The notes beneath the pieces are model-generated. The model worked only from the letters and a program-made list of their open reading frames with translations. It did not search any database and had not been told where the DNA came from. Below, in pieces: positions 30,436 through 64,000 of a DNA stretch of 64,000 bases. Origin of the DNA: Macrostomum lignano. Its lineage: Eukaryota. Within the stretch, counting starts at the first letter, position 1. The number at the start of each line of letters is the position of its first letter. The DNA is taken from positions 49,890-113,889 of the forward strand of contig NIVC01003178.1 in the NCBI GenBank assembly GCA_002269645.1. The letters are read 5' to 3'. Position numbers and translations under genes: made by a program.

Positions 30436-30509
30436 GGCTGCTGAAGCTGGTTGGCTGGAACATGTATTCATAGCGATCGATGCAGTTGCGTATCAATAAA
30501 TATATCTGT

Positions 30510-31170
30510 TCCCTAGCCAATCAAAAATCGACCGATCTGTTCCCTAGCCAATCAAAAATCGACCGATCTGTTCCCTAGCCAATCAAAAATCGACCGATCT
30601 GTTTCCTAGCCAATCAAAAATCGACCGATCTGTTCCCTAGCCAATCAAAAATCGACCGATCTGTTCCCTAGCCAATCACAGATCGGCAGGCTGTTCCCTA
30701 TCCAATCACAGATCGGCAGGCAGTTTCCTTTCCTAGCCAATCACAGATCTACAGAAGGCTGTTCCCAAGACAGTCACAGATCTACAGAAGGCTGTTCCCA
30801 AGACAGTCACAGATCTACAGAAGGCTGTTCCCTAGACAGTCACAGATCTACAGAAGGCTATTCCCTAGCCAATCACAGATCTACAGAAGGCTGTTCCCTA
30901 GCCAATCACAGATCTACAGAAGGCTGTTCCCTATCCAATCACAGACCTACAGAAGGCTGTTCCCTACCCAATCACAGATCTACAGAAGGCTGTTCCCTAT
31001 CCAATCACAGACCTACAGAAGGCTGTTCCCTATCCAATCACAGACCTACAGAAGGCTGTTCCCTATCCAATCACAGACCTACAGAAGGCTGTTCCCTATC
31101 CAATCACAGACCTACAGAAGGCTGTTCCCTACCCAATCACAGACCTACAGAAGGCTGTTCCCTACCCAAT
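30510..31170. repeat. ~33-bp minisatellite between APH1 and AMACR
   Basis: CCAATCACAGATCTACAGAAGGCTGTTCCCTA-type units. Confidence 0.88.
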
Positions 31171-31579
31171 CACATCGGGTCATCGGATCTTAACAATCAC
31201 GAATCTACAAAAGGCAAAATAGTCAAACGGATGAGTCATAGGACGTCTTGTTTTAACAATATTCGACCGGAGTCTGAGCATAACTTTCGGTTGTATGTTC
31301 TTAACTTTCAAGCAGGAAAATCAGAATTAAAAAAATCAACAAATAAGGTCTTGCTTCAGTAATGTGAAAACAAGTACAAATTAAGGCACCTCTATAGTTA
31401 TAAAATGAATTTGCAAGAGAAGTTAATTATGAGCTGAAGCCGAAAGTTAAAGTCCTACGTTATATACTGGTAGTTTACAATAAACAGGGATATGGTTTTT
31501 GATGTTCTAATATTGAAACGAGCAGCAGCGGACTATGAAAGAGGCTTCAAAGACTGCAGACTGGAAGAAAAAAAGATTA

Positions 31580-34500: not shown

Positions 34501-37206
34501 TGGGATCTGGGTGTCAGTGACAATGGGTTGGGATCTGGGTGTCAGTGACAATGGGTTGGGATCTGGGTGTCAGTGAAAATGGGTTGGGATCTGGGTGTCA
34601 GTGACAATGGGTTGGGATCTGGGTGTCAGTGACAATGGGTTGGGATCTGGGTGTCAGTGACAATGGGTTGGGATCTGGGTGTCAGTGACAATGGGTTGGG
34701 ATCTGGGTGTCAGTGACAATGGGTTGGGATCTGGGTGTCAGTGACAATGGGTTGGGATCTGGGTGTCAGTGACAATGGGTTGGGATCTGGGTGTCAGTGA
34801 CAATGGGTTGGGATCTGGGTGTCAGTGACAATGGGTTGGGATCTGGGTGTCAGTGACAATGGGTTGGGATCTGGGTGTCAGTGACAATGGGTTGGGATCT
34901 GGGTGTCAGTGACAATGGGTTGGGATCTGGGTGTCAGTGACAATGGGTTGGGATCTGGGTGTCAGTGACAATGGGTTGGGATCTGGGTGTCAGTGACAAT
35001 GGGTTGGGATCTGGGTGTGAGTGACACTGGGTTGGGATCTGGGTGTCAGTGACAATGGGTTGGGATCTGGGTGTCAGTGACAATGGGTTGGGATCTGGGT
35101 GTCAGTGACAATGGGTTGGGATCTGGGTGTCAGTGACAATGGGTTGGGATCTGGGTGTCAGTGACAATGGGTTGGGATCTGGGTGTCAGTGACAATGGGT
35201 TGGGATCTGGGTGTCAGTGACAATGGGTTGGGATCTGGGTGTCAGTGACAATGGGTTGGGATCTGGGTGTCAGTGACAATGGGTTGGGATCTGGGTGTCA
35301 GTGACAATGGGTTGGGATCTGGGTGTCAGTGACAATGGGTTGGGATCTGGGTGTCAGTGACAATGGGTTGGGATCTGGGTGTCAGTGACAATGGGTTGGG
35401 ATCTGGGTGTCAGTGACAATGGGTTGGGATCTGGGTGTCAGTGACAATGGGTTGGGATCTGGGTGTCAGTGACAATGGGTTGGGATCTGGGTGTCAGTGA
35501 CAATGGGTTGGGATCTGGGTGTCAGTGACAATGGGTTGGGATCTGGGTGTCAGTGACAATGGGTTGGGATCTGGGTGTCAGTGACAATGGGTTGGGATCT
35601 GGGTGTCAGTGACAATGGGTTGGGATCTGGGTGTCAGTGACAATGGGTTGGGATCTGGGTGTCAGTGACAATGGGTTGGGATCTGGGTGTCAGTGACAAT
35701 GGGTTGGGATCTGGGTGTCAGTGACAATGGGTTGGGATCTGGGTGTCAGTGACAATGGGTTGGGATCTGGGTGTGAGTGACACTGGGTTGGGATCTGGGT
35801 GTCAGTGACAATGGGTTGGGATCTGGGTGTCAGTGACAATGGGTTGGGATCTGGGTGTCAGTGACAATGGGTTGGGATCTGGGTGTCAGTGACAATGGGT
35901 TGGGATCTGGGTGTCAGTGACAATGGGTTGGGATCTGGGTGTCAGTGACAATGGGTTGGGATCTGGGTGTCAGTGACAATGGGTTGGGATCTGGGTGTCA
36001 GTGACAATGGGTTAGGATCTGGGTGTCAGTGACAATGGGTTGGGATCTGGGTGTCAGTGACAATGGGTTGGGATCTGGGTGTCAGTGACAATGGGTTGGG
36101 ATCTGGGTGTCAGTGACAATGGGTTGGGATCTGGGTGTCAGTGACAATGGGTTGGGATCTGGGTGTCAGTGACAATGGGTTGGGATCTGGGTGTCAGTGA
36201 CAATGGGTTGGGATCTGGGTGTCAGTGACAATGGGTTGGGATCTGGGTGTCAGTGACAATGGGTTGGGATCTGGGTGTCAGTGACAATGGGTTGGGATCT
36301 GGGTGTCAGTGACAATGGGTTGGGATCTGGGTGTCAGTGACAATGGGTTGGGATCTGGGTGTCAGTGACAATGGGTTGGGATCTGGGTGTCAGTGAAAAT
36401 GGGTTGGGATCTGGGTGTCAGTGACAATGGGTTGGGATCTGGGTGTCAGTGACAATGGGTTGGGATCTGGGTGTCAGTGACAATGGGTTGGGATCTGGGT
36501 GTCAGTGACAATGGGTTGGGATCTGGGTGTCAGTGACAATGGGTTGGGATCTGGGTGTCAGTGACAATGGGTTGGGATCTGGGTGTCAGTGACAATGGGT
36601 TGGGATCTGGGTGTCAGTGACAATGGGTTGGGATCTGGGTGTGAGTGACACTGGGTTGGGATCTGGGTGTGAGTGACACTGGGTTGGGATCTATGTCAGG
36701 GAATTCAACGCACCCAGCGCGGCCAGGAGGCCCCCGCCGGCAAAGTCGGCCAGCAGATTGACTGGCGGCCGGGGCGGCGAGTCGCCATCGGCCAGGCGGG
36801 ACAGCACGCCGGACGCGGCCAGATAGTTGATGTCGTGTCCGGGACGCTGGGCCAGCGGGCCGGACTGTCCGTAGCCGCTGAGCCGGCTGTATACTAGGCG
36901 GGGATTTTTGGCCAGGAGGCGGTCGGGCCCGAAGCCGAGCTTCTCCATGACGCCGGGCCGGAACGGCTCGATGAGGACGTCGGAGGCGGCGCAGAGCCGG
37001 CGAAATGCAGCGCCGCCGCTGGGAGATTTGAGGTCGAGGGCCAGCGACTCCTTGCCGCGGGCCAGCCGGTCGACCGTGAAGGCGGCGTCCGCCCGGTCGA
37101 CGCGGACAACCCGGGCGCCGAGGTCGCGGAGCAGCAGGCCGCAGAAGGGCGCCGGCGCCAGACCGGCCAGTTCAACAACGCGAACGCCTGCCAGAGCTGA
37201 GGGCAT
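31580..37206 (-). CDS. AMACR: Alpha-methylacyl-CoA racemase (CoA-transferase III family); exons 37206-36714, 33090-32721, 31910-31580
   Basis: [83 protein letters not shown]; intron phases are consistent. Confidence 0.95.
31980..32700. repeat. 30-bp minisatellite in an AMACR intron
   Basis: GGGGATTCAGGTGTGGGGATCTGCGAGGGT units. Confidence 0.9.
33200..36690. repeat. 28-bp minisatellite in an AMACR intron
   Basis: (GGGTTGGGATCTGGGTGTCAGTGACAAT)n, about 120 copies. Confidence 0.97.
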
Positions 37207-37319
37207 GGCGGCCGAACTGGCGCAGCTGCGGGGGCGAATTCGGCAAGCTTTGCTGCTGATATAAGCTGGGCTTGGCTAGGAAATTCGGACAAGTATAAGC
37301 CTGGGGCAAGAAAAGGGTG

Positions 37320-38340
37320 CGGCGGCACATCAAAGGAGCCGGAGGCAGTGAGGGAAGGGTGCAGCGGCACATCAAAGGAAACTGAGGTTCATGAGGCAGT
37401 GAGGGAAGGGTGCGGCGGCACAGCAAAGGAACCTGAGGTAGGAAGGGAAGGGTGCGGCGGCACATCAAAGGAGCCGGAGGCAGTGAGGGAAGGGTGCGGC
37501 GGCACATCAAAGGAGCCGGAGGCAGTGAGGGAAGGGTGCAGCGGTACATCAAAGGAACCTGAAGCAGTGAGGGAAGGGTGCGGTGGCACAGCAAAGGAAC
37601 CTGAGGCAGTGAGGGAAGGGTGCAGCGGTACATCAAAGGAACCTGAAGCAGTGAGGGAAGGGTGCGGCGGCACAGCAAAGGAACCTGAGGTAGGAAGGGA
37701 AGGGTGCGGCGGCACATCAAAGGAGCCGGAGGCAGTGAGGGAAGGGTGCAGAGGCACATCAAAGGAACCTGAGGTTTATGAGGCAGTGAGGGAAGGGTGC
37801 GGCGGCACAGCAAAGGAACCTGAAGCAGTGAGGGAAGGGTGCGGCGGCACAGCAAAGGAACCTGAGGTAGGAAGGGAAGGGTGCGGCGGCACATCAATTG
37901 AACCTGAGGTAGGAATGGAAGGGTGCGGCGGCACATCAAAGGAACCTGAAGCAGTGAGGAAAGGGTGCGGCGACACATCAAAGGAACCTGAGGTAGGAAG
38001 GGAAGGGTGCGGCGGCACATCAAAGGAACCTGAGGTAGGAATGGAAGGGTGCGGCGGCACATCAAAGGAACCTGAGGTAGGAATGGAAGGGTGCGGCGGC
38101 ACATCAAAGGAACCCGAGGTAGGAAGGGAAGGGTGCGGCGGCACATCAAAGGAACCTGAAGTAGGAAGGGAAGGGTGCGGCGGCACATCAAAGGAACCTG
38201 AGGTAGGAAGGGAAGGGTGCGGCGGCACATCAAAGGAACCTGAGGTAGGAATGGAAGGGTGCGGCGGCACATCAAAGGAACCTGAGGTAGGAAGGGAAGG
38301 GTGCGGCGGCACATCAAAGAAACCTGAGGAACCTTGGAAA
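37320..38340. repeat. 36-bp minisatellite upstream of AMACR
   Basis: GAAGGGTGCGGCGGCACATCAAAGGAACCTGAGGTAGGAAGG-type units. Confidence 0.92.
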
Positions 38341-45143: not shown

Positions 45144-47423
45144 TCACTGGGCCTGCTGCAGAGGTGCCGCAGTTGTAGCCGCCGACGACGAAGAAGTCGA
45201 AGGATGATTTGTGGAAGATGGCGGAGGCGGAGGTGGCGGCGGCGGCTGCGCCATTGCGCCCTGCGGAGCGGCAGCCGCGCCAGCGGTGATTGGCTGGCGG
45301 CATTCCCGACAGCGGTGCTGCTGCGCCTGCGGCTCGGTGGCCGGCAGCTCCATGTCCGAGCCGGCATCGGACTCGGACAGGTTGCGGGTCAGCCGGTCCC
45401 GCTTGTCCGACTCCGTCTGAAGGCGCCGCTTCAGTCTGGTGTTCTCCTGCACCAGGCAGCGCTCCTCCTGCTCCAGCTTGCTCATCTTGAGCTGGTGCTC
45501 AGCCTGGCTCTGGTCCAACTGCTGGCGAAGGTTCTCCAGGTCCGACTTCAGCTGGTTGATGTGGCTGGCCATGGCTTCGGGATCCGTGAGGCTGCACTCC
45601 ACCTGCGGGAGCGTTAGAAGAAACAGTGTAATCACCGATCTCTACATGACTATCACCAATCTCCACATGCCTGTCACTAATCTCTACATGCCTGTCACCA
45701 ATCTCTACCTGCCTATCACCAATCTCTCTACTACTCCGTGGGTAACCTGCTCACCTGCATATCAGAGGTGCTAGACGATTGGCGACTTCGCCTTGACGTT
45801 TCGGGACCCTCCCCGCTGGAGGTGGCAGCGGCGACAGCAGCAGCGGCGAGACTGCCTTCAAGCCGACGCTGGAGACTCTTTTTCTCCGCCTCGAGTTTCT
45901 CCATCCGCTTCCACAACCGGTTCACCAGCGATTCCTGGCGTTCGGGATTGATGTCAAAACATTTAAGCTCAAGTCTGCACTGGGCTGTCACCCCCAGGTA
46001 TGTCAAAGCCAGGCAACACACGGCAGCAACATAGCGTCTCACCTGCTCTTGCTCCAGCGCGTTCTCAAGTGACACCTTCTCCTGGCGAAGCTGGTCCAGC
46101 GAGGCCTGCTTAGCGCACACGTCATTCTCCAATTTTTCAATCCGTTTGAGCAGCTTGTTCACCTGGGCCTCCTGTTCGCGTTCTAGCTCCATCTCGAGGT
46201 CCACCTTTTCCTGCGTTGAACAATTGATGTTTAAAGTTTTTTCTATAATAGAACCGATATGTATCGATAATATATAATACTCAGCCAAATTCTAAGGACA
46301 TAACAATCGTGTTTTGATCTATGAATAGTTTATTTGATGGGAGCTATGAGCTAGCTAATTAGCGCAAACCTGCTTAAGCCGGAATAGACGCCTGGTGAGA
46401 TCGTTAGTGAGATGCTCCTCCTCCTGCTCGTAGCTCTGGGCCAGGCGCTCCTTCTCTTTCTGAAGATTCTGAATCTTCTTCAGCATTGTGTTGGTAATGT
46501 ACTCCTCTTCCTGCTCGGCCTTGGCATGAATGCTCACGCTATTCCGGCGCAGTTCCAGGTTCTCCTGCTGTAAAGCTTTCACGCGCAGCTTCAAAGTTTC
46601 AACCTCCATGCGTAGGACGCGCTTCTCCTGTGGAATGAATTGAGGCGGCAATGTACAGGGGTAGATAGAAGTCGCTGTTTAGAAGGCTGGGTAGAGGTGG
46701 TGAAGTGGTGAAGTGGTGGAGTAGAGATGGCTTCCTAAAGACAACTTGGAGGGGTGGCTCACTAAAGTACAGTGGATGTGGTGACTCACTAAAGTACAAC
46801 GGATTGGGTATAGGTGGCTCAATAAAGTACAACGGATGGGTAGGGGTGGCTCACTAAAGTACAGTGGGTGGGTAGGGGTGGCTCACTAAAGTACAGTGGA
46901 TGGGTGGGGTAGGGGTGATTCACTAAAGTACAACGGACAAGTGGGGTAGGGGTGATTCCCTAAAGTACAGTGGATGGGTGGGGTAGGGGTGATTCACTAA
47001 AGTACAACGGATGGGTGGGGTAGGGGTGATTCACTAAAGTACAGTGGATGGGTAGGGGTGGCTCATTAAAGTACAGTGGATGGGTAGGGGTGGCTCACTA
47101 AAGTACAGTGAATGGGGTAGGGGTGGCTCACTAAAGTACAACGGATAAGATAGGGGTGGCTCACTAAAGTACAACGGATGAAACAGGGGTGGCTCACTAA
47201 AGTACAACGGATGAAATAGGGTTGGCTCACTAAAGTACAGTGAATGGGGTAGGGGTGGCTCACTAAAGTACAGCGGGTTAGACAGGGGAGATTGCCCTGG
47301 CACTACCTGCAGCAGAGAGTCAATACGCCGCCGCAGTGACTCCATGCCCATGCCGGCAGACACTGAGCCATCAACTGACGAAGCATCAGACTCGGACGCG
47401 CTGTCGCACTGCATTGATGACAT
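45144..47423 (-). CDS. CCDC6: Coiled-coil domain-containing protein 6; exons 47423-47307, 46627-46370, 46210-46043, 45934-45755, 45602-45144
   Basis: [49 protein letters not shown]|[18 protein letters not shown]; all introns phase 0 GT-AG. Confidence 0.93.
46740..47280. repeat. ~36-bp minisatellite in a CCDC6 intron
   Basis: GGGTAGGGGTGGCTCACTAAAGTACAGTGGAT-type units. Confidence 0.9.
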
Positions 47424-47669
47424 TTTTGGCTAAATAATCTGTTGCTAGGCAAGAGCTGAAGTTGGATTTCATGACAAATTCGTTAAAAATTTGGTCAAAA
47501 AACTTAATGAAAATGTTTTCATAGGTTTTTGTTGCTTTGATAGAGACACATATTATTTGTCTAAGTTGCAATGAATCTATTCTCCTTAGGTTGAAATTCT
47601 TTTTATTCCATAGACTCAGCTTGGATAGAATGAGAATGAGAATGAGAAATGAGAATCAAACTACTTCTT

Positions 47670-48150
47670 GATAAGGGAACTGCTGAGGCTTACTGGGGGA
47701 AGTGCTGAGATGTCAAGGCTTACTGGGGAACTGCTGAGAGGTCAAGGCTTACTGGGGGATACTGAGATGTAAGGCTTCTTGGGGGAATTGCTGGGATGTC
47801 AAGGCTTACTGGGGGAATTGCTGGGATGTCAAGGCTTACTTACTGAGGGAATTGCTGGGATGTCAAGGCTTACTGGGGGAATTGCTGGGATGTCAAGGCT
47901 TACTGGGGGAATTGCTGGGATGTCAAGGCTTACTGGGGTAATAGCTGGGATGTCAAGGCTTACTGGAGGAATTGCTGGGATGTCAAGGCTTACTGGGGGA
48001 ATGGGGGAACTGCTGAGATGTCAAGGCTTCCTGGGGGAATGGGGGAACTGCTGAGATATCAAGGCTTACTGGAGGAATTGCTGAGATGTCAAGGCTTACT
48101 GGAGGAATGGCTGGGAATGGCCAAGTCTTATGGGGGAATTGCTAAGATGT
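47670..48150. repeat. 30-bp minisatellite
   Basis: GGGGGAATTGCTGGGATGTCAAGGCTTACT units. Confidence 0.9.
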
Positions 48151-51100
48151 CAAGGCAAATAGGATACACAAATTATTTTCGTCCCTTGCTTATTGGCCGC
48201 CCCAAAGGGGGGCACAAGATTGCTAGTCAATATGCTTAGGATACATAATAAATATATTATTTCTAATACTTATTGACCAAAGGCCAAAGCAATGCATTGA
48301 ACCTTTAAATTGGAATTCAATCATTGTTTTTGCCAAACAATTGACCAAAGCTTAAAAAAGAATTGTGATTCTTTGTTTTTTTGCTTGCTATATCCTTACT
48401 TTCATTTTCTTTATCATTTAACTTCCAAATAACTATATATTAAGTTTTAATTGCTTATGGTTTCATCAGAGATCAAGATCAAACTAAAAGATAATAATCA
48501 ATTTATCAGCAACATAAAATACTTCCAGACAAATCAGTTATAATATAAGGGGCATATCCAATGTTTGTTTAATAACTGTATTTAATTAAAACAAACTATA
48601 GGAAAGTTACAGCTCTCAATAGTCCTTTGAGATAGCATTTGTTTACAATAAATACATATTGCTAGAACTTTGGCTGCTTCCAAATTCTAATGGCAATGCC
48701 AGAATCACATGTTTGTTATACAGCTTAGAAAACTATGCTAAAAAGCTCATCTTTAGGCAATAGCAGTAACAGGTTAGTGTCACATTGATTTATATCTGGA
48801 GTGTATGCTAAATAAATCAGCTTTTTTTAATAGTTTCTATATAGCCCTATAGGACTAGTACTGTCATGCAACCAAATATGGCAGGTCCCTCTTAAGAATC
48901 TAGTGTATAATCACTAATATTAATCTTAATAATCTTTATAAATTACAAAGTTCCTGACTTTATATAATATTCTTGGTTGACTATCTATCAATGACTTCTA
49001 GTTCCTATATATTAAATAGTTAGATCTACAAAAACAAGTTTTTATATTATGATATTGTTAAGCTTATCAAAAATAATATTATATAAATATATATGTATTA
49101 TCTAATATATATTAGATTATTTTAGAATATTTGATTATATTTAGATTTAGATTGAGGTAGAATATATTTGACACTAAAAACATTGGTTCAAAAAGTTAAA
49201 TTTCAGAGCAGGGATTCCTAGTTTAGCCCACAAGCCTAAAAGTGTCAATTATCTTGAGCTAATGAGTGATGCAACATGCTTTTTCAATAATGACATATTT
49301 GATATAGCTCTTACATTTTCTATCAGCTTCATACAATGCACACATGGATTCATTTATCCACTTGTCTATGCATTGCTCTCAAACAAGATAAAAAGTGTAT
49401 TTCTATTTTAAGAGATCCTATCTTTAATCCTGAGCTAATGTGTATGTCTATACTTGAGTCTATAGGAATAGATGACAGATTTTGAAGTGGCACAGAATGC
49501 TATTAATAGAGCTTTTGTATAGTAACAAATGGTTGCTTCATCTTTGCCACTGTATATATAAGAGTTATTAGTTTTAGATCAAAGTCAAGGTAAAATGAGA
49601 CAAATGGTAGGTTTGCTTTTTGGCCTGATCTTTGGCCTTTGTGCCTCCAATGGATGTTCTTAACTGTTCTATGTAACTAAATAGTACTGCAGCTTATGCT
49701 TGCTAACTATTTTGAGGACACTTGGATTGGTTATCCACATGCTAAGATTTTCAATCAAAACCTGGAATTTATGTTAATAGAAATTGGAAGGTCAAATCTA
49801 CTTGAAAGAAAACAGCACTAAAACATTGCACTATTGTTTTTTGTCTCTTCTTAAGTGTCATAGCCTAACTTTATTCAAATTGCTAAATTAGCTGAAAGCT
49901 AAGCAAGAAGCTTAGACAATAAGGTTGAACAACCTATTGCAGATATGCAGTCACAAAAATGCACATGGTACTAATTAGATGATGAGGCATTTAGCCTTAA
50001 TAATACACTTATAATTACTTTTATTGTTTACCAAAACTTACATAAAGTTTGTTGTTTCTTTGATAGGTAAGTCCCATTTTTGGTCAAAAAGTAGGTTGTA
50101 TGGCCAGTGTAAATCAAGGGGTTGCATAATATGTATGTACAAAAAACTGATGCCCAAAGTAAAGTGGTCATTAGAAGCTATGGAGCAAAAGATAACCTAA
50201 CATACAACTTGCTATGTGGTATTGACCACAATCTAAAAGTATAAGCATGTTAATTTAGTTTTTTTATTGATTCAACTTTGTTTTATTTTAGATTAAACTT
50301 CTTTGATAATTATAGGTATAGATTTTATGGTAGCAACAGTTTTTATTGTTTATTGCTATATTACTATTTAATTCTGTCTATAGTCAAATAGCCTAGAGAA
50401 TAAGTTTCTTGGCAATTGTTTTATTATGAGCATAGCAATAAAATTGCACTAGTCAATTGTTATACATCGAACAAAATAAGTTGAGCAAAAATGGATTAAG
50501 AAATCATCTCTTAGAGGTCTCTCTTCAATTCTCTCACCCTATTTTCACTCTTAAGCCTTTGTCCACTCTTAGTCTTTCTTCACTCTCAGCATCTCTCTAC
50601 TCTTGTGTAGCCTCTCTCTATTCTCAATCTCTCTCTGCTCTTAGCATTTTCTACTCTTACCCTCTTTCTACTCTCAGTGTCTTTCCATTCTCACCCTCTA
50701 CTCTTAGCATCTCTCTACTCTAATGTAGCCTCTATCTACTCTCCCCTTTCTCTACTTTCAGGCTCATTCCACTCTTAGCATCTTTCTATTCTCAGCTCCT
50801 TTCCACTTTCAACATCTCTCTACTCTCACTCTCTTTCTACTCTCAAAATCTCTTCACTCTTATGCAGCCTCTCTCCACTCACACCTTTTTTCTACTCTCT
50901 AAGAAACAGTGGGTGAGAGTGATTTTTTGACCATAAAATTCATTTTTGACAGTGGGATTGATTGCTCTTCCAAAAAGGATATAACTTTTATTGTCTGGAC
51001 ACTTATCAAATAGCAGTTATCCTGCATTGGTCCCTGCATTGGAGCTTAATAGTTTTTGATAAAGAAAAATCATTAAAATGGCAAGTGTATACCCATGTGT

Positions 51101-54100: not shown

Positions 54101-55362
54101 TATATAAATTATAAATAGAACTAGACTAGGGAGGCTAAACAAAAACTAAAGTCAAAATGATTTCAGTTGTATTATAGATAATTAGTTTCAAATCTAATAT
54201 TAGGCCTATTGGATTAATCTTTGACAATGATGATTATTTAAACATAATAATTAATATAACTTTAGTTATCAAGTTACAAAACAATGTCAATGGTAAAAAG
54301 AGAAATTTAGATATAGGCCCTAGCTCGTAATAAAGATTTAATGTTGTGGCCATCTTGGTATGTGGCCATCTAGGCCTAAAACTAGGCCTAATTGACAAGT
54401 GCTAATGGCATGCTATGGCCTATGGGTAGCTTCTTTCTAAGTCATCATATTCCTAGGACCTAGACCTAGTCTGCTAGTGCTAGTCTTTCTCTTAGCCTAG
54501 CAGTAGGCAGCCTAGGCATGGTACCACTATGGGGGGGATGGTTGAACAACTAGGCCTAGGCTGATTAAATAGTAAGCATTGGACTATGCTTCATAATGCC
54601 TAATATTGATAGCATTCACATCCAATAGGACTCTAGGAGTAGGACTATTGATTAACCTACACGGCCACTGGGCCTAGGCTACAGGCCTACAGTGTATACT
54701 GAGTAGAGCAGTATGGCCATGGGCTATATCTACTAGCCTATCTATAGAATACGTCTATAATAATAGAAATTGCATGATAAGGTTTTAAGGTTATGACGAG
54801 ACTTATTATATTTTTATTTGACTCTTCTTTGCATTTTATTTAGTATATATCATACCCGCTATAGTAAAATCCGACACATCACACATTAAAATATACTGAC
54901 AGTCTCTAAACGAGGTAGTTTCGAAGAAAGCCTAATGTCGCGCGTGATTAAATAAAAAAGGCTCAGGTAACGGTTTTAATTCGCTAGGCCTCAAAAATAC
55001 GTCTCGAAATAGGAAATTTAATTGGCTTTTAATAGTTATAACTAAAAGTTTCTGCAGAATAGGGTTATATAGTTTTGTATACTATTCTAAATAACTTTTA
55101 GTGAAAATTTTATTTTATTTTTAAATAAAAATTTTTCTTTGGCATAGATATTTTCTATTATTTATTATTTATATTTATTAATTTCGAAGATAAGGATTAT
55201 TCAATTTTATTAAAATAGCTGCTTATTAAGAATTTTGAACTGTGGGTCTGGGACGTAGGTAGGATTTTTATCATACGTAAAAATCACACGTAGGTTAGGT
55301 ATGATTTTTGAGACCCTTGATTATTTCTTCAGCGCCAGTGTCGCCAAAGCTGCTGGCATGCG

Positions 55363-55461
55363 AGTAGTAGTATGTTATAAGGGGTTGCGCCACACTTATT
55401 GCTCGGGCGCATTGCGCGCCAGCTCGCTGGATGACTCAACCCCTTATAACATACTACTACT
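55363..55461. repeat. 25-bp perfect inverted repeat enclosing two small hairpins (candidate element terminus)
   Basis: AGTAGTAGTATGTTATAAGGGGTTG (55363-55387) / CAACCCCTTATAACATACTACTACT (55437-55461); internal GCGCA-T-TGCGC and CCAGC-TC-GCTGG. Confidence 0.85.
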
Positions 55462-55886
55462 ACCAGGAGGTCATGGGTTCAAGTGGGGTGTGATAAATAT
55501 AAAAATATATAAATATACATATATCTGTGACTGAGGGTGTTGAGGGTGAGGGCATGTGGGGATCATTGGCCTGTGGTATATTTCTCAGAAGACAGAATTT
55601 CCGGATTTTTTATACTTTTAAAAAGGGGGGGTGCCCTCGCCCTCATGCCCTCACTCATTTTGAAAATCACTAAAAATAACTGAAAAATGACTAAAAACAG
55701 GTGAAAATGGTCTGAAAACAGCGATTTTTTGTGATTTTCTATTTTTTTTAAAAAGTGCAATTTTCACGATTCCAGCTCTAAAACCATGAGAAAGGTTGGA
55801 TCCTCGGGTCAATTTAATGCAATTTCAGGTATATACAATATGAAAGTGTCATCCAATTCAACGATAGTAAATTTTATATATATAAA

Positions 55887-58124
55887 ATGGCCTTCAGTAA
55901 ACCATTATTTCTAGGAAATGCTTTAGATATTCAGTCAGCTATAACAAAACTACCACCCATCTTCGCCACTGGAAAATACCCAGGAGAACTTCATATTCCA
56001 GGGTATTCTTTTGCAGGTTACGTAGTGGCCTGAGTGAGGAAGTCAATGTCCTTGCTAGTCATCAAATAAGCACTTGTTAAAGTTTCTATAGTAAAAATGG
56101 AGCAAACAATTCGAGAAATTCTTCTGAAACCAATTGATGATAAGGTTGGGCATGATCAAATTCTTCATGATCTTTTCCAAGAAGAGTTAATAATTTCACA
56201 CAAGATTAAAGTTATTCAAATGAGACTAGGCAGACTATATGAAATATTAGCAGAAAATTATTTTGGATTCGAGAAGGTAAAAAAGATAGACCTGGTTCAC
56301 GTTGAGCGAAAGATTGCATTAGAGCTTAAATCTTCTGATAACACGGACAATTCATCAAGTCGTGAAAGGAATTATCAGAAACTATTAGACTATAAAAATT
56401 CTTATCCCACCTATCAGTTGTATTATGTATGCATCAATAGAACTACAAAGGAACCTAAGAATATTTTACTAGACAATGGAATCACCCTTATAACAGGAGA
56501 ATTTGCATTGAAATTTCTTTATGGTGATCAATACAAAAACATTATAACCAACATTAAACAAGTGCTTAGTGATTGGCGACACCTTCAAATTGCGGGAACT
56601 CCGTCCGATTCTAGTACGTCAATAACAGCCTCAAGTACCACTTCAGTTGAGAAATCTTCTGAAGGAACACAGGTAATTCCTGTTCCCAATCGGACTTCGT
56701 CCGCGAACCTATGGTTCGATGGTAACAAGCTTGAGGACATGGTGGAAATCCGCAGCCAAGCTCCTAAGTCCGAACGAAGTTGACAAGGATATGGAGAAGG
56801 TTCAGAGACTTAATGGGGGTGGGGCTGAAGGATCTGGTCAATCCTGATGAAGCCTTAAGATAAAGTCCAGCCTCTTTCGAAAGATTGAGGAACAACTGCC
56901 GGGTACAAATTTAGACAAGAGACTCAATCCAATTACAGACCGGCCTCGGTATGACAGTCTACCAATTAACCCAATCGATTGGACTGCTTACTATCATGAC
57001 AAAAACTATAGAGATGCTGAAAACACTTCTTCAAATCCAGAGGAAGCTCTAGCAAAGAAGCATATAGCTGATGAAAAAATGATAGCTGATTTAGATGCTA
57101 TTCCAACCAGTGACTTGTCTGTGAAAGAGAGACTCATTCGAAATCTAGTAAAGCGTATTATCAAGGCTAAAGTTCGGTTTGGATTAGGCATTCATACTCA
57201 CAACCCCAACAATTGTATAGACTGTCTAACAATTTATGGTAAGGGTCTTAGCTATGAAGATGCAGTAAAATTGCATAAAGAATATCGAAAGCCAAGAGTA
57301 TTTAGAAAAATGATTCACTATGCAAAAGACACAATTTGGCATGCAGATATTATTATCCTTCCTCCTGAAAGAGGTTACAAATATGCTCTCACTATCATAG
57401 ATGGTTTTACACGTTACGCCTGGGCAGTTCCTTTGAAAACAAAGACGGGAGCGGAAGTTGCAGAAGCTTTCCAAAAAGTATTTAAGGAATCAGGAAGACG
57501 ATCAGAGAGACTTTGTGTAGATGAAGGCAAGGAGTTTTATAATCAGCATATGTACAAGCTATATTCGTTTTCAAAAGACAACATTAGAAAGAAGGATGAA
57601 AAGGGTGAATATATAAACAAGATGTTTTCAATTTATGGCGAGTCCAAGAATGCAATGATTGAGAGGTTCAATCGTACTCTCACAAATAAACTCTGGTTTG
57701 AATTTGATCTACAGGGTAATCAGAAGTGGCTCCACACATTGCCAGCTATTGTTGAAAAATACAACAACACAATCCATTCTGAGATTCTGATAACTCCTTC
57801 AGAAGCATCTAAACATCCTGAGCGAGTACCAAAGCCAACTTTCGAGTATTCAAATGGAAACCAAACTTCAAAGTAGGTGACAAAGTTCATATCTATAGAT
57901 ATAAGGAGCACTTTGAAAAGGGTCGAAGAGGATATTGGAAAATTTCAGAAGTGTTTAGGATAAAGAAAATAGTTTACTCCAATCCCATAACCTACATTAT
58001 TGAGGATGAGAATGGAGAAGAAATTATTGGATCATTTTACAAATCCCAGCTTCTACCAGCAAATTTTTCAACTAAAAATGAGCGCCTATCGAACAAACTG
58101 CAAACGGGCGAAAGGTCAGATTGA
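55887..58124 (+). CDS. PLA2-integrase fusion: exon 55887-56018 + exon 56899-57876; C-terminal domain continues in the -1 frame to 58124
   Basis: Spliced product reads ELHIPGYSFAG|PGTNLDKRL..PINPIDWTAYYHDKNY..ADEKM (parvovirus-type PLA2), then HTHNPNNCIDC, then DDE core (WHAD, VDEGKEF, IERFNRTL). After a frameshift near 57850 comes FKVGDKVHI..FEKG..W..EVF..NPITY..DENGEEIIGSFYKSQL. Confidence 0.88.
56019..56898 (+). ncRNA. Group I self-splicing intron (IC1-like), 880 nt, with endonuclease ORF
   Basis: 5' exon ends in U and pairs U.G in P1; the intron ends in omega-G. P/Q/R/S elements AAATTGCGGGAA, AATCCGCAGC, GTTCAGAGACTTA, AAGATAAAGTCC; P3, P4, P7, P8, P9 and P9.0 pairings are present. Removal restores the reading frame. 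Confidence 0.95.
56097..56783 (+). CDS. Intron-encoded PD-(D/E)xK endonuclease, type II restriction enzyme-like (putative homing endonuclease)
   Basis: IQMRLGRLYEIL..KKIDLVHVERKIALELKSSDNTDNSSSRERNYQKL; intact 228-codon ORF in the P2.1 loop. The last ~70 codons overlap the ribozyme core. Confidence 0.75.
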   Translation: MEQTIREILLKPIDDKVGHDQILHDLFQEELIISHKIKVIQMRLGRLYEILAENYFGFEKVKKIDLVHVERKIALELKSSDNTDNSSSRERNYQKLLDYKNSYPTYQLYYVCINRTTKEPKNILLDNGITLITGEFALKFLYGDQYKNIITNIKQVLSDWRHLQIAGTPSDSSTSITASSTTSVEKSSEGTQVIPVPNRTSSANLWFDGNKLEDMVEIRSQAPKSERS

Positions 58125-58500
58125 AACGTCTGATTCACAACTACTAGCTGATAAAGAGGGTGAAGGAATTGGTGATATGATCAGTGGTGTCACAAACTTT
58201 TTATCAAATCATGGAAGTAAAATTGTGAGTGGAGCTGATGCAATAGGTAAAACAGCTACCACAGCGAAGAACATATTCGATGCGAAGAAATCATACAGTG
58301 ACATGTCTAAAGCAGGTGAGGAACTGGAATATATTAAAAAGAAACGTAGAGATAAAGAAGCAAAGAAAAGAATGGAAGAAGAGCAACAGATAGCTTCTCA
58401 ATCAAATAAGGCTATTCAAGATATTGTTAAAAAGGCTCTAGGAACAGCAGAACAGTCTCAAGTGTCTTTGAGACAAGGCAATGGTTTGAAGAAATTCTGA
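58078..58500 (+). CDS. Small virion/core-like protein of the Polinton (unknown function)
   Basis: ATG in TAAAAATG context; amphipathic segment after EGEG|IG, Lys/Glu-rich coil, C-terminal RQGNG|LKKF. Confidence 0.6.
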   Translation: MSAYRTNCKRAKGQIETSDSQLLADKEGEGIGDMISGVTNFLSNHGSKIVSGADAIGKTATTAKNIFDAKKSYSDMSKAGEELEYIKKKRRDKEAKKRMEEEQQIASQSNKAIQDIVKKALGTAEQSQVSLRQGNGLKKF

Positions 58501-58508
58501 CCTTAAAA

Positions 58509-58960
58509 ATGAGCGAGAAAAACACTGAAGCAAGACTCAATCGATATGTTCGAGAGGGAAAACCAAGATATGTTACTGTAAATAAGCAAAAGCAATATCT
58601 TTCTAAAGAGAAGATTCGAGAATTGCAAGAGAAACAGAAAGAACATGAAGGTGGAATAATTCCTCTATTAGGCTTACTACCAGCAATTTTGGGTGGTATC
58701 GGAGCAGCCTCAGGAGTTGGTACAATGATTGCAAAAAGTGTTAATACAGCCAACAATGCTAAACTAATAAGACAATAGAAAGCATTGAACGGCAAAAACT
58801 AGAAGAGTTGAAAAAGGCTCAAGGGAGTGGAGTATTAGTTGATGCGGCTAAAAGAGTCGAACAAGTACCCAGCGAAGCAGTCAAGTGGCTGCTAAAGACT
58901 TTTAAAGTTGAAAAGGAGAAACAGGGTAATGGGATAATTCTTAGACCTCATGAAGCTTAG
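58509..58960 (+). CDS. Adenovirus pX-like core protein candidate (frameshift near 58770)
   Basis: Basic N-terminus then EGG|IIPLLGLLPAILGGIGAA, resembling the adenoviral pX GG-FLP hydrophobic segment. Continues in another frame through AQGSGV..KQGNGII to TAG 58958-58960. Confidence 0.5.
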
Positions 58961-58980
58961 TTGAAATTTCTCTTATAAAA

Positions 58981-60345
58981 ATGGAGAACAAAAAGGATAT
59001 ACTGAGCATATATGAGGACAAAACTTTTAGCTTTTTCAAAAAGAAAGAAGACTATATTAAGATTTCTCCAACTCCAGGTAGCACTAATAATCTCAATGTT
59101 GCAGGAGGTCAAATAGTTCATGAAGTCAATTCAACAGAGTCATACATTCTCATGTCAGAGGCATTCGGTTGTATAAAATACTCAATAACACAACGAGATA
59201 ACACCGACTTGAATACGAACATTACTCTAGAACATAATTGGCCTATGAGACTTTTCTCTCAACTCATAGTTGACATTGGAGGAACAAAGAAAGTCTATAA
59301 TGATCCTGGAGAGTATGACACAATCTTAAAGTCCGTAATGTACTCAAAATTAATGAATGAAGTTGGAGAAGCATACGGATGGATTCCAGACACTGGAGAT
59401 GCTGGGACTGTTTCTGATATACCTCTAGCAAACAACGCAGATGCTGAAGCTGTGAGAACTGCAGCAATCGCTATGAAAAATAGACTCAATAAGAAGGATT
59501 CGAATACTGGATACATTAGGAGGCTTGAAAATTATAACAATGTCACTAATGCTCCAAACAGAGGTGGAACAATCAAACTATCATTAACACCTCTCATTGG
59601 GTTCCTTGATTGGCAGAAGATTAGCAAAGGAATTAAATATAAATTCACATGGACAAGAAAGACTAACGATGCTGAAATTTTCTTTGGAGCTGCCGGGACG
59701 GAAGCTAAGTTAACTATTAATAGCTTTGAGATTTGGATCCCTGCTATTACTTTGTCACCCAGTGCTGAAGCAGCTTTTCTAAAATCACTCAACAAGGACA
59801 TTACAGTATCATTTCCAGAGAGGGTAACGGTTCCACCACAACTCATTCAAGGAAGTCCATATACATGGAACATAGCCAACATCTCCAATATGCCACTTGC
59901 AATCTTTGTAGCTTTCAAATATGACGTAAACAACCCATCATATATAGTTAATGATCACAAGTATGTGTCTTACAAAACTGGAGCAAATTCAGTGAAAATA
60001 ACCCAGCTTCAAGTCAGATTAAATCAGGTGATGTATCCGAATGATTATGTTGAAATTGATCCAGTAGCTCAAGACATTCACAGAGCGTATGAAATGTACG
60101 AAGACATCTGCAGCCGTTTCGGTGTAACTCCTCCATTCAATAAACAAGACTTTCTAACCATCTATCCAATCTTTTGCTTTGATCTAACAGCTCAAGATGA
60201 GTTTCTGGTCAAGAGTGGAGTGAATATTCAATTATTTATCAAGAAGTCAACAAATGTTGAGCTGACTGCTTTTGCACTAATTCTTGAACAAACAAAGAAT
60301 GTAATAAAAGTTACCAGTGAATATCAAATGACCCGCGTCGAATAA
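58981..60345 (+). CDS. Major capsid protein (double jelly-roll, Polinton/adintovirus hexon)
   Basis: Intact 454 aa, beta-rich; NWPMRLFSQL, VRLNQVMYP, YPIFCFDLT resemble Polinton MCP motifs; sits next to the ATPase. Confidence 0.8.
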   Translation: MENKKDILSIYEDKTFSFFKKKEDYIKISPTPGSTNNLNVAGGQIVHEVNSTESYILMSEAFGCIKYSITQRDNTDLNTNITLEHNWPMRLFSQLIVDIGGTKKVYNDPGEYDTILKSVMYSKLMNEVGEAYGWIPDTGDAGTVSDIPLANNADAEAVRTAAIAMKNRLNKKDSNTGYIRRLENYNNVTNAPNRGGTIKLSLTPLIGFLDWQKISKGIKYKFTWTRKTNDAEIFFGAAGTEAKLTINSFEIWIPAITLSPSAEAAFLKSLNKDITVSFPERVTVPPQLIQGSPYTWNIANISNMPLAIFVAFKYDVNNPSYIVNDHKYVSYKTGANSVKITQLQVRLNQVMYPNDYVEIDPVAQDIHRAYEMYEDICSRFGVTPPFNKQDFLTIYPIFCFDLTAQDEFLVKSGVNIQLFIKKSTNVELTAFALILEQTKNVIKVTSEYQMTRVE

Positions 60346-60366
60346 GGTCATTTTTTCTTTTTTTAA

Positions 60367-61140
60367 ATGCCCAAAGTAAAATTTCAGCATGATCCTATTT
60401 TCCCTAATCCTCTTTTATGTTGTATTATCGGCGCTACAAATACGGGTAAAACATATTTACTATTCCATATTCTTACAAGTCCTGAAAAACTAGTTGACTT
60501 TAATGAGTTAGTTTTATATGTTCCCAGAGCATCTCAAATGGATCCAGAGTATCAGTTTCTAAAGCATGGCTTTGAAAATGGTCTCCCACCTTCTCTTATC
60601 AACTCCCTCTATCATGTCTACCAGGTGAGTGAGGATGCATCTCCTGAAGATATTAAGCATATTTGTAACGAGGCAGCCGACCTTGGTGGAGTGCAAAGCA
60701 CATCAGAAAATTCAGAAGTAATAGAGAAAATTTCTGTCACTCTTTCCCATACTCCAAATGAAGAAATTTTTCATAATGGACTAAAGACATGTGTGATATT
60801 GGACGATGTTTTGGGAGAGGCTAATCAAACATTTCAGGAAAGTCTGTTTCAGAGAGGCAGGCATGGAAACTGTTGTGGTTTTTATCTAGCTCAAAATTTT
60901 ACCAAACTAGATCGCAATACTGTCAGGGAGAATACGACATGTTACATAATCTTTAAACAAAAAGATACAAACTTAAATCACATTGCTAGAAATATAGAAA
61001 CGAATTATGAACCCGCTATATTCAAGGCTAAATGTAGAGAGGCTTGGAAAAAGAAGTATGGCTATATCTATATAAATACAAGAGCTGATGAGGATGAGCA
61101 AGATTTGTATAAGGATGTTCTAACTAAAATCCCATTGTAA
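60367..61140 (+). CDS. A32/FtsK-like DNA packaging ATPase
   Basis: Walker A GATNTGKT, Walker B CVILDD, RGRHGNCCGFYLAQ, VREN; intact 257 aa. Confidence 0.92.
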   Translation: MPKVKFQHDPIFPNPLLCCIIGATNTGKTYLLFHILTSPEKLVDFNELVLYVPRASQMDPEYQFLKHGFENGLPPSLINSLYHVYQVSEDASPEDIKHICNEAADLGGVQSTSENSEVIEKISVTLSHTPNEEIFHNGLKTCVILDDVLGEANQTFQESLFQRGRHGNCCGFYLAQNFTKLDRNTVRENTTCYIIFKQKDTNLNHIARNIETNYEPAIFKAKCREAWKKKYGYIYINTRADEDEQDLYKDVLTKIPL

Positions 61141-61142
61141 AA

Positions 61143-61870
61143 ATGACTAATGAATATATAAGAGAACTCATTAATTTAGCAAAGCAGCGAGAAATGTACA
61201 AATCCAGAAATGATGCTCAACGCTATTTGAAAATTGGAGAAGAGAGTTTATATGCAAGAGTGGCTCCATTAGCTCAAAAACCTGTCACAGAAAAGCTCGA
61301 TGAATTTATTGATGTCAATGCCAACCTTGTTGATAAACTTCAGAATCAAAAAGTTCCAGTTCCGCAATCAAGTACACCAAAAGGCCGATTTGAACCCTAG
61401 AAGTATTTGACAAAATAATTGAAGAAATTGAAAGATTCAATAACTCAAAGACCAGCGCCTAGTATACGGATTCAAAAAACTGATGCTGGATATATATTTG
61501 GATCATCTGTAATAGATGTTGAATTCCATGAACAAGGTCGAGACATCATTGTCAATGAAGTTCGAATGCCATTTTCTGAAGATCTTGAAGAGTTGTTCAA
61601 AATGCCTAAAGTAACTGAAAATGGTGAAGAGCTGAAGCAATTCAAGATGCAAACATTGCAGGATTATGTTAACCTCATTGAACATTGTAAAAATCCAGCG
61701 GCCAAATCAAGTGGGAATTATAAGCAAGCAGTAAGGATATTGAAAGATAATCCACCAGGATATCGAGTAAAACCGGGATCTGGACTCAGTGAAAGAGTGT
61801 TGACATTACTAGCCGCAAAAGCAGGGACATAACAATGTTGATAAAGAGCTAGTAGAATTACTTGCTTAAA
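61143..61870 (+). CDS. Conserved Polinton protein of unknown function, split by frameshifts (ORFs 61143-61400, 61419-61832)
   Basis: PVTEKL N-terminal motif; C-terminal GSGLSERVLTLLAAKAG/NNVDKELVELL resembles a C-terminal motif I recall from Polinton proteins. Confidence 0.5.
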
Positions 61871-61871
61871 A

Positions 61872-62657
61872 ATGGAAAAAGAAATAGAAAAAGTCAACAT
61901 CCTCTTGAGTAAAAAGTTTCAACGCACATTTGACTTCTTTTCAATTAAAAACCCATTTCGACAAACTCTAGGCACTCCTATAAATTTGTATGAAGATCGA
62001 GAATACGAAGCTGGTATAAAAAAGTTTGCAGTCTTTGATGCTATTAACAATATTGAAGGAGGCAATAATGAGTTGCGATACTCGAGGGATAGTGGTAGAA
62101 CATGGAAAAAATAAAGATTCAAGGATCTTGGGAAGTTAAAAGTCTGTCAAGCGAGATTCAAAGATTGCTAACAGCTGCAAATGATTGGAAAGAGGGGGCT
62201 ATTGTTTTCAGTGCAAGCCTAGACACGCGTAGAGTTGAGTTACGGTTAGCCACAGAGTATCAAGTTGATTTCAGGGATGCACATTCCAATAACTTTAGAA
62301 GACTGTTGGGATTCAATTCGAAGTGTATTTGAAACCATTTGAGAGAGCTCCAAATCCAGCTCGGATAGACGGAGCTAGAAGTGCGATCATGGTTCGTTGT
62401 CTCAATATCAAAGGGGGTTTTATCACTGATCCAGCCAATGGAATCATTTAATTGATAAGCAAATACTTCTTTCAATTCCATCGTTCTCTGTCCCAATGGG
62501 AAGTAAAATTATTCAAGAACCTGCAAATCCTGTGTACCTACCACTAACTACAAACATGTTGAGCACATTCGACTTTGTCATCGAAGATGAGTCTGGTGTT
62601 CTATACGACTTTGATGGCGAGGAAATATTTATAAATCTACACGTACGACAAATATGA
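61872..62657 (+). CDS. Minor capsid protein (penton, single jelly-roll), with about 2-3 frameshifts
   Basis: INNI..GNN.LRYS, W..I.I..GSWEV, LLGF, and C-terminal SVPMGSKIIQEPANPVYLPL..DESGVLYDFDGEEIFINLHVRQI. Confidence 0.75.
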
Positions 62658-62666
62658 GTGTTAAAA

Positions 62667-63094
62667 ATGAGCGAAGCTGAGACATGGAATGCATTTAAAC
62701 AAAAGTTTGGACTGACACTACGACTAATATTGATCTGATAAATTGGGCAAAATATCTCAAGTTAAAACCATTTCGCTATGCCATGAGAGATGAAATTGTT
62801 GATTTACCACAGTATGGTTACTTTATGACAAATATTCACACTTCGAAGAACGGGTATACATCATTCAGCTATATTTTCAGCTCCTGATAAGGTTTATTTT
62901 TTTGATTCCTATGCACTACACCCCACACTGGAAATTATGGAAAAGTTTAATCACACAAAGAATAGAATATGTGGAGACATGGAAAAACAAATTCAAACTT
63001 TGATAAGAAATATTTGTGGTCAAATGTCGCTGTACTTTTTACACGAATCGATAAAGGAGATAGCTATAATGAAATTTTGCAGCAATTAAAATGA
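62667..63094 (+). CDS. Adenain-like cysteine maturation protease, frameshifted
   Basis: TNIDLINWAK.L, NIHTS..G.HH, YFFDSY, IQ....NICGQMSLYFL pieces (His-Asp-Gln-Cys order) spread over shifted frames. Confidence 0.7.
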
Positions 63095-64000
63095 GTTACA
63101 AGAATACTGCAATCAATTTGGTTACTCGTCAAATTCAAATGATATAGCGCCTGGAATAACAATAGCGTTAGCTGATGATCGTACATCAATGAAAATGAAG
63201 GATATAAGAGAGAGGAAATAGATAATTTATTGTTAGCAAAGAGAAATGTTGCAGACTCTTAATTCAAAGGAAGATAGTGACCAATGAATAATCAGCCATG
63301 CTACAATTAATTGACGATGCTCATGGGCGCTAAACAATGTCTACACAAAACCGAAATTGACACTAAGATGTATTCTAAAAACCGAAATTTACACTTTGTA
63401 GCAGAAAGGCAAGGTACTGTGGGGGTACAGAGAGTTCGAAATTAGTCAATATTCTTCATTACTGACTTCAACGCTTCCCATCCTGACATGAAAGTGACCG
63501 CTTCTCATAACTCTTCAGCAGCATATCATGTTGCAGATTCAAACCAGCTTCAGAATGGAGCAGTGTAGATGACTGCAGACAAGCTGGATACGATTCAATT
63601 TCTGAAAAGAGCTAGGAAAGTTGTAGAGATAAAGTTGGAAGGAGAGGTGTGGCCTGGTTGTCTGTTAGTGTGAGCCTAAATGGAAAAACTGGACACCTGT
63701 TGAACAAAGTGCACCCATTGAAGCTACGAAGAGGCAATGCACATCTTAGGAAAAAAATACCCAATCCCTCATATTATTTCCATTATTCCTCTAATTTTTC
63801 TGGTTCCGTAAAGCTTACAAAATTGAATTACTTGAGAGACAAACAGTGGTTAATGATTTAGTGTGGCCTATAGATAGACTTCAAGCTGTACCAAAGCTAT
63901 ACGTAGACAATGCACTTGAATCAGTGGAGCTGCGACTTAAGGCGGGGACTAGGTTTCAATCTTATACAGGATATATTCCCCACTAGCAACACGTCAAAAC
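63091..64000 (+). pseudogene. Fibre-like ORF remnant, heavily frameshifted, runs off the window
   Basis: Repeats of the YxKxEID type (GYKREEIDNLL, YTK.EIDTK, YSK.EIY) in shifting frames; starts at an AAAATG. Confidence 0.35.

Follow-up and report, generated by a model that had tools for sequence, protein, structure and literature searches.

How does an open reading frame (ORF) that resembles a type II restriction enzyme come to be housed in a group I intron, and might it move the intron that houses it? The question arises from 64,000 nucleotides of Macrostomum lignano contig NIVC01003178.1 (assembly GCA_002269645.1, positions 49,890 to 113,889 of the forward strand; hereafter the window), whose last ~8 kb belong to a polinton-like virus (PLV) inserted into eukaryotic DNA; the window takes in its left part and ends before the PLV does. 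The intron interrupts the integrase gene of this element. An earlier account made without database searches (the sequence-only reading) described the ORF as a restriction-type nuclease rather than a classical homing endonuclease, a view upheld by its membership of Pfam family PF09553, by a predicted fold like that of EcoO109I and by an alignment with the catalytic residues of AvaII. The explanation towards which we lean, with a little better than even confidence, is that a restriction enzyme lacking a methylase acts as the homing endonuclease of its own intron. The features on which the argument first depends are as follows.

55887-56018, + strand: exon 1 of the PLA2-integrase gene, 44 aa, C-terminal ...YSFAG, last codon GGT
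56019-56898, + strand: group I intron of 880 nt; 5' splice site marked by a U.G pair (T56018.G56028), terminal residue G (G56898)
56097-56783, + strand: intron ORF, 228 aa, ATG to TGA, of which residues 1-165 (to about 56591) correspond to an Eco47II-family PD-(D/E)xK nuclease domain
56899-58124, + strand: exon 2 of the PLA2-integrase gene, starting PGTNLDKRL (CCG GGT ACA) and encoding the remaining PLA2 domain, the rve core and a C-terminal domain

Family, fold and active site of the nuclease

The ORF is intact over its whole length, as originally described. When searched against Pfam at E <= 10, it returned RE_Eco47II (PF09553) alone, with a score of 29.5 bits where the gathering cut-off is 25.9 (E 7e-7; the match spans model positions 54-186 of 202); PF09553 is also matched by 33 of 36 members of the nuclease family (best E 8.2e-10), one of which touches RE_SinI as well. 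This bears out a likeness to Eco47II that had been proposed in the sequence-only reading, and the lack of any LAGLIDADG, GIY-YIG, HNH or His-Cys family among the results agrees with its report that such motifs are missing. Nor was there a match at this threshold to PF11645, the I-Ssp6803I family, which implies that the ORF represents a different PD-(D/E)xK lineage recruited to an intron. An NCBIfam search gave no match, a single-protein sequence search of the PDB gave nothing significant, and Foldseek against viral predicted structures gave weak, uninformative matches only.

AlphaFold2 models residues 1-165 with a predicted local distance difference test (pLDDT) score above 90 and an alpha-beta-beta-beta-alpha-beta core. 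Comparison of this model with the PDB by Foldseek produced three significant matches, all of them to the type II enzyme EcoO109I (best E 2.6e-5, probability 1.0), so the structural check that the sequence-only reading had proposed came out in its favour. The modelled domain has a PD-(D/E)xK fold with conserved acidic and lysine residues, spaced as D65-x10-E76-x-K78; the Q, ID and ELKS.DNTDNSSS pattern picked out earlier is present, but the ID-x9 spacing given for it was wrong. Across 36 sequences K78 never varies, at least 90% keep E76 and D65, and the run T83-D-N-S-S-S88 is invariant or nearly so; for E49 conservation at this level is confined to the 16 closest relatives. The window copy retains all of the family-invariant residues.

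A weak local profile match (E 0.76) to AvaII (PDB 6g3b) sets ..iDl..(x10)..eLKnsdnTDnsss against ..VDF..(x13)..QVKNRDNTENSSS, placing D65 on D147 and E76-x-K78 on Q161-x-K163, with the motif KN-x-DNT(D/E)NSSS common to both. The catalytic set of AvaII, which cleaves G^GWCC, consists of D147, K163 and the residue before K163 (PMC7337904), hence the alignment falls on the active site. EcoO109I cleaves RG^GNCCY (PMC7337904), and homologues of Eco47II cleave GGNCC (PMC10305163).

Relatives of the nuclease are numerous (a protein collection at 90% identity yielded 42, one at 50% identity 317 clusters), and its domain is under purifying selection, the ratio of non-synonymous to synonymous substitution rates (dN/dS) being 0.13-0.27 wherever dS is unsaturated. 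This constraint, and the retention of the invariant residues in the window, make it very unlikely that the ORF seen here is a relic, its frame open only because too little time has elapsed in a decaying insertion. Such an origin is suggested by the frame breaks, relative to intact relatives, in at least four genes of the element (the integrase, where tblastn with intact relatives returns two frames, and the homologue of a 147-aa gene have one apiece, and two downstream genes have one or more each), as well as by the truncated ORFs of the nuclease relatives P0011 and P0015, some copies in assembly ERZ25070786 being truncated. The sequence-only reading had set the unbroken ORF against its broken neighbours; the breaks are real, but the capsid and ATPase genes are also unbroken, so the comparison is only partly informative. 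A relic would in any case bear on the state of one copy and not on the identity of the gene.

GGNCC and the Gly-Pro site of the integrase

As glycine is encoded by GGN and proline by CCN, any Gly-Pro pair spells GGNCC, and it is inside such a site that the intron sits, separating the Gly codon from the Pro codon in the Ca-binding loop of the PLA2 domain (YxG before the intron, PG after it). The identical point is occupied in six loci (the window, L005, L043, L002, L003 and L004), with exon sequence ...AGGT upstream and CCNGGTAC... downstream. The junction, which reads GGGCC in the intron-less loci L124 and L127, is split into GGT and CC in all six. At the loop, the uninterrupted homologue from L124 (P0221, 75% identical) reads ...GELHIPGYSFAGPGTNLDKRLNPI, and L124 DNA aligns with the window as far as 56017 and resumes at 56898 with nothing between, agreeing with the splice sites to within one base. 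At least 54 uninterrupted GPG alleles occur among the top 120 integrase homologues, and assembly ERZ25070786 contains both intron-plus (L001, L003) and intron-minus (L127) copies of one PLV family, beside retrotransposons. This is a group I intron with exact bounds that is polymorphic for presence and absence. Were the enzyme to cleave like its relatives, the insertion point would lie within the 3-nt stagger of the cut.

Three states of the Gly-Pro site can be distinguished. The pair is split in six of six intron-bearing alleles. In three further loci the Pro has been replaced and no GGNCC is present there (G-T-G in L007 and L125, G-A-Q in L128), and in each of these a free-standing nuclease homologue lies directly beside the integrase, upstream in L007 and L128 and downstream in L125. 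L128 was retrieved to test this predicted link, and its upstream gene, of 177 aa, matches the family profile at E 7e-41. Lastly, L124 and L127 have an uninterrupted Gly-Pro, and this intron site is the sole GGNCC of each; no nuclease was found in the DNA covered for either, which in L124 reaches just 473 bases upstream of the gene. The last Gly-Pro site has thus been lost in nine of nine nuclease carriers and retained in two of two non-carriers: carriage of the nuclease is linked to loss of the site.

The pentanucleotide is also scarce in the remainder of these elements, as the window illustrates.

54675-64000, no strand: GGNCC-free tract, the entire part of the element within the window, with 0 sites against 8.8 expected

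The whole window contains 84 GGNCC sites, of which eight lie in the 7 kb to the left of this tract, where the GC content is equal. When the nuclease-carrying PLVs are pooled (46.5 kb), a single site is observed against 34.5 expected (z = -5.7), no other of the 136 strand-merged XXNYY patterns being so strongly depleted; none of the other G/C-only patterns of this form is depleted in the carriers, and CCNGG, which has the same composition, is observed 54 times against 35 expected. In the host flanks of the same loci GGNCC density is normal, and in every locus the sites end where the PLV starts, leaving the last 13.2 kb of L002 and the last 13.3 kb of L128 free of them. Density is likewise normal in L123, a distant element whose integrase is related but which lacks the nuclease. 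Two other targets that the junction could offer, CCNGG and CCGG (also made by Pro-Gly codons), were rejected because neither is depleted. The depletion of a bare 5-mer suggests that five base pairs matter for recognition, to which further contacts may add, and from this, with the specificities of related enzymes, we infer that the nuclease cleaves GGNCC-type sites.

A separate observation concerns coding capacity. In the absence of GGNCC, the PLV parts of the window (54675-64000), L002, L004, L005, L007 and L128 cannot encode Gly-Pro dipeptides in frame, a constraint that extends to the protein sequences of the whole virus.

Outside the PLVs, relatives of the nuclease are found mainly in giant viruses, as the sequence-only reading had anticipated for large DNA viruses: a metagenome scan returned chiefly giant-virus homologues, and 32 IMG/VR loci, mostly giant-virus metagenome-assembled genomes, carry relatives. 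Homologues of about 30% identity are common in such giant-virus genomes. A C5 cytosine methylase gene (PF00145, E 1e-75 to 1e-85) adjoins the nuclease homologue in all eight of the giant-virus loci examined (L011, L012, L016, L023, L045, L071, L076 and L101), lying on the opposite strand and convergent with it in seven. These neighbours look like complete restriction-modification pairs of the Eco47II type, and it is probably from such a system that the PLV nuclease was derived. Avoidance of GGNCC throughout the family was rejected, since giant-virus loci vary, the site being enriched in some and depleted in others, a pattern which fits the presence of their methylases. No methylase family match was found in the called genes of the window element, L002, L004, L007, L127 or L128.

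The pairing with a methylase in eight of eight giant-virus loci raises another source for the depletion, namely that the avoidance of GGNCC is forced on PLVs from outside, by Eco47II-type restriction-modification systems of the giant viruses that provide the factories for PLV replication, and that the PLV nuclease may have some other, perhaps longer, specificity. L127 is in keeping with this, having no GGNCC in 7.2 kb besides the homing site despite its want of a nuclease. As the sole explanation it seems distinctly unlikely, because it leaves unaccounted for the loss of the Gly-Pro site in every carrier and its retention in both non-carriers, because the characterised enzymes nearest to the PLV nuclease in family, fold and motif all cleave GGNCC-type sites, and because giant-virus loci themselves show mixed patterns. 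Giant-virus enzymes of like specificity nevertheless probably contribute, given that L127 is also depleted.

The homing explanation starts from the P2.1 loop of the integrase-gene intron, which carries the gene for a nuclease of ~165 residues, of PD-(D/E)xK type and of the Eco47II/AvaII/EcoO109I group. Every uninterrupted integrase allele bears GGNCC exactly at the intron site, which the intron destroys, and carriers, having no methylase, would be protected by having no GGNCC. A rival element that kept its Gly-Pro site would be cut there by the nuclease, and repair from an intron-bearing copy would install intron and nuclease gene together, a process that would constitute homing of the intron. 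In a wider form, about which we are slightly more doubtful than confident, PLVs would possess a methylase-less GGNCC enzyme against which they protect themselves solely by having purged its sites; the integrase Gly-Pro would have been neutralised either by replacement of the Pro or by an intron that houses the nuclease, and the enzyme would serve both as a weapon on unmethylated rivals (other PLVs, perhaps giant viruses) and as a homing endonuclease.

The start of the ORF is marked as follows.

56092-56099, + strand: gene-start motif TAAAAATG of the intron ORF, overlapping its ATG

The + strand of the element has seven copies of this motif, every one of them at the ATG of a gene with homology support, and the - strand has none; the relatives L005, L007 and L128 show the same habit. 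It looks like a promoter or initiator signal common to these PLVs. Its position at the start of the ORF, as at other PLV genes, makes the nuclease gene look like an ordinary PLV gene unit within the P2.1 loop, which would be expressed by itself from the internal start signal. Such a gene start would suit a general weapon or defence gene of PLVs, that is, a solitary restriction enzyme directed at giant-virus or rival DNA, the cassette having landed in the tolerant loop of a pre-existing intron that it does not move. Homologous restriction-modification pairs in giant viruses point the same way, as does the greater diversity of the free-standing homologues (23-46% identity to the window protein) relative to the intron-borne clade (45-63%). 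This alternative is on balance unlikely: the intron lies exactly in the one GGNCC kept by coding constraint, and intron-plus and intron-minus alleles coexist among close relatives and within ERZ25070786, which is the pattern that homing produces. The two readings do not, however, exclude each other.

Several points weigh against the homing explanation. The margin of the Pfam match is just 3.6 bits over the cut-off, identity to characterised enzymes is low, and the AvaII match by itself has an E value of 0.76. Homing endonucleases typically recognise sites of about 14-40 bp, far longer than a 5-bp specificity, and a 5-bp site would match the host genome so often that expression of the nuclease must be restricted somehow. 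The depletion in L127, which is without a nuclease, means that depletion cannot be credited to an element's own nuclease alone. The association between carriage and site loss is drawn from 11 loci that are phylogenetically non-independent. Finally, the window copy is decaying and may no longer be active.

The ribozyme, the overlapping ORF and the surrounding element

The intron was identified by RF00028, the sole Rfam family in the window, which matches 56506-56889 over the full model (88.9 bits against a threshold of 50, E 2.2e-21), and it is predicted to be self-splicing. Its parts were assigned as follows.

56014-56032, + strand: P1, formed by the last bases of exon 1 and the internal guide sequence (IGS) GGCCTG; from sequence reading
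56034-56055, + strand: P2 hairpin of 7 bp, whose stem sequence varies by lineage with pairing kept; by eye
56067-56078, + strand: P2.1 clamp, 5' strand TAAGCACTTGTT, perfect complement of 56557-56568
56557-56568, + strand: P2.1 clamp, 3' strand AACAAGTGCTTA, within the ORF at codons 154-158
56580-56890, + strand: ribozyme core P3-P9; a P5abc-type extension occupies 56629-56736 and the P6a loop contains the ORF stop codon

The L005 intron scores 65.3 bits with Rfam, those of L001-L004 fall below the threshold and no intron is called in L006-L010. The presence of an intron in each locus was settled by nhmmer with a profile of six cores, by which L001-L004 are homologous, L001 over part of the core only. 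Applied to the six introns, RNAalifold recovers P4, P5, the P5abc-type extension, P6, P6a, P7 and P8, with 67 pairs of which 22 are compensatory, and P3 can be seen by eye to covary too. P1 shows a compensatory change, exon C with IGS G in the window against exon T with IGS A in L002-L004. The pairing of P2 was judged by eye because a MAFFT gap in the 5' alignment puts it out of register.

The sequence-only reading had the ORF looped out of P2.1 by a perfect 12-bp stem, and the two 12-mers are indeed exact complements. A perfect stem of 10-14 bp is present in all six introns, in each of which a segment 41-54 nt into the intron pairs with ORF codons 154-158. When the 5' segment was shuffled 2000 times per intron, an equally long complement arose in none of the shuffles for the window and L004 and in 1 to 29 for the other four. 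The clamp sequences are unrelated between lineages, so that a perfect stem of different sequence in each related intron amounts to full compensatory covariation; the 5' strand has evidently tracked coding changes on the 3' strand. As the clamp lies after P1 and the 7-bp P2 hairpin, the label P2.1 is reasonable.

Beyond the clamp, ORF and ribozyme overlap at 56557-56783, about 75 codons (some 70 had been estimated in the sequence-only reading) that take in the 3' strand of P2.1, P3, P4, P5/P5abc, P4', P6 and the start of P6a. The corresponding tail, residues 167-228, is predicted to be disordered (pLDDT below 50), and the conserved P3/P4 stretch is translated in different frames by two clades, as LQIAG or FKLRE. 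In five full-length intron ORFs the stop codon falls 51-156 nt ahead of the 3' splice site, and some relatives, including the free-standing gene of L007, stop at about 170-180 residues. Being disordered, missing in some relatives and read in two frames, the tail is treated as RNA-constrained read-through and not as part of the enzyme, and on these grounds a function for it was not adopted as the default view. Translation of the ORF in frame with exon 1 was likewise rejected, as a stop lies four codons past the splice site. The window copy alone carries a 30-nt in-frame insertion (56703-56732), which forms two small hairpins in the P5abc extension and adds 10 residues to the tail.

Dual maturase and nuclease roles are established for other intron proteins, and the physical entanglement of ORF and ribozyme might suggest that this protein is mainly a maturase, aiding the folding of the intron with its nuclease activity lost. 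That is extremely improbable, given that the putative catalytic residues E49, D65, E76 and K78 are conserved, that free-standing and giant-virus homologues exist without any intron, and that where the ORF lies over the RNA core its product is predicted to be disordered, with two clades using different frames.

The element itself stands out by composition, GC content being 0.4-0.6 over bases 1-48000 of the window and 0.36-0.38 over the last ~8 kb. The genes of this region are all on the + strand and comprise an rve integrase with a parvovirus-type PLA2 domain (exon 2 matches rve at E 3.8e-10 and Phospholip_A2_4 at E 0.002), a double-jelly-roll capsid protein, which identifies the element as a PLV, and an A32-type ATPase.

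58981-60345, + strand: major capsid protein gene (double jelly roll), 454 aa, intact; PF21738, E 1.7e-13
60367-61140, + strand: packaging ATPase gene (Pox_A32 type), 257 aa, intact; PF04665, E 5.5e-6

A protein-primed DNA polymerase gene is present in one complete relative. Related PLV copies adjoin long terminal repeat (LTR) and non-LTR retrotransposons in metagenome assemblies, and an integrase scan of IMG/VR, which yielded a single distant locus, shows that database to be almost devoid of this PLV clade. Upstream of exon 1 lie inverted repeats (55546-55560 with 55640-55654, and 55662-55682 with 55719-55739) and two tandem 21-mers (55663-55704); homology with relatives begins only at ~55865, and the repeats at 55546-55739 may represent an element end or a regulatory region. 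In the host part, blocks of GC skew of up to 0.6 with short-peptide-repeat ORFs (PLYFSEPPL-like and GIAGMSRLTG-like), at 26000-38000 and 46600-48250, look like simple-repeat DNA unrelated to the nuclease.

Relation to known restriction and homing enzymes

Homing endonucleases and restriction enzymes share folds, but few extant intermediates between them are known. The present family is found in three states, as giant-virus restriction-modification pairs, as solitary genes beside a PLV integrase and within a group I intron of that integrase; if the account given above is true, it would form a direct evolutionary bridge between the two kinds of enzyme, with the free-standing and intron-borne states both extant. 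The distribution also points to a part for sequence-specific nucleases in the conflicts between PLVs, giant viruses and protist hosts, and full loss of the Gly-Pro dipeptide from the proteins of a virus would be an unusually clear case of coding sequence shaped by nuclease pressure.

Group I introns of PLVs have been counted before. A Microbiome survey of 2025 lists RF00028 matches, lying near the capsid gene, in PLVs of three protist groups, represented by Paulinella micropora, Desmodesmus armatus and Rhodomonas lacustris (PMC12220804); its text and two supplementary files leave the associated protein unannotated and contain no mention of Eco47II, of a PLA2-integrase host gene, of a target site or of site avoidance. 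A literature search found no paper linking Eco47II-type enzymes to introns or to PLVs. The present analysis assigns such introns a host gene, a protein and a candidate mechanism. The target-site logic of GGNCC at Gly-Pro, the genome-wide avoidance of the site and the free-standing relatives are new here, and had not been seen by the sequence-only reading.

The nearest characterised enzymes are the type IIP group of Eco47II, AvaII, SinI and EcoO109I, which cleave G^GNCC-type sites. The PLV protein resembles them in its PF09553 membership, in its EcoO109I-like predicted fold, in the D...(E/Q)xK and KN-x-DNT(D/E)NSSS motifs that it has in common with AvaII and in its predicted GGNCC target. Giant-virus homologues still come with a C5 methylase in the classical manner. 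The PLV protein is shorter (a domain of about 165 residues) and without a methylase partner, its gene can lie inside a putatively self-splicing intron of a eukaryotic virus-like element, and self-protection is apparently by absence of sites instead of methylation.

Known homing endonucleases of the PD-(D/E)xK type, I-Ssp6803I and the Vsr-like I-Bth0305I (PMC3424549), belong to families other than that of the ORF. With I-Ssp6803I there are likenesses in the restriction-enzyme fold, in being encoded by a group I intron and in a target, here a predicted one, that spans the insertion site. By contrast, that enzyme is of an unrelated family (PF11645), is bacterial, from a cyanobacterial tRNA intron, and has a 17 bp site (PMC3424549) as against the apparent 5 bp core here.

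A route by which free-standing homing endonucleases located beside their target gene enter introns has been proposed (Bonocora and Shub 2009 and Zeng et al. 2009, as cited in PMC11296320). The PLVs recall such systems in having the same family both free-standing beside the integrase (L007, L125 and L128) and within the integrase intron (the window, L005, L043 and L002-L004), the pair of states which that route would connect. The known cases, however, are phage enzymes of the GIY-YIG and HNH families with long sites, while those described here belong to eukaryotic PLVs and are of the restriction type.

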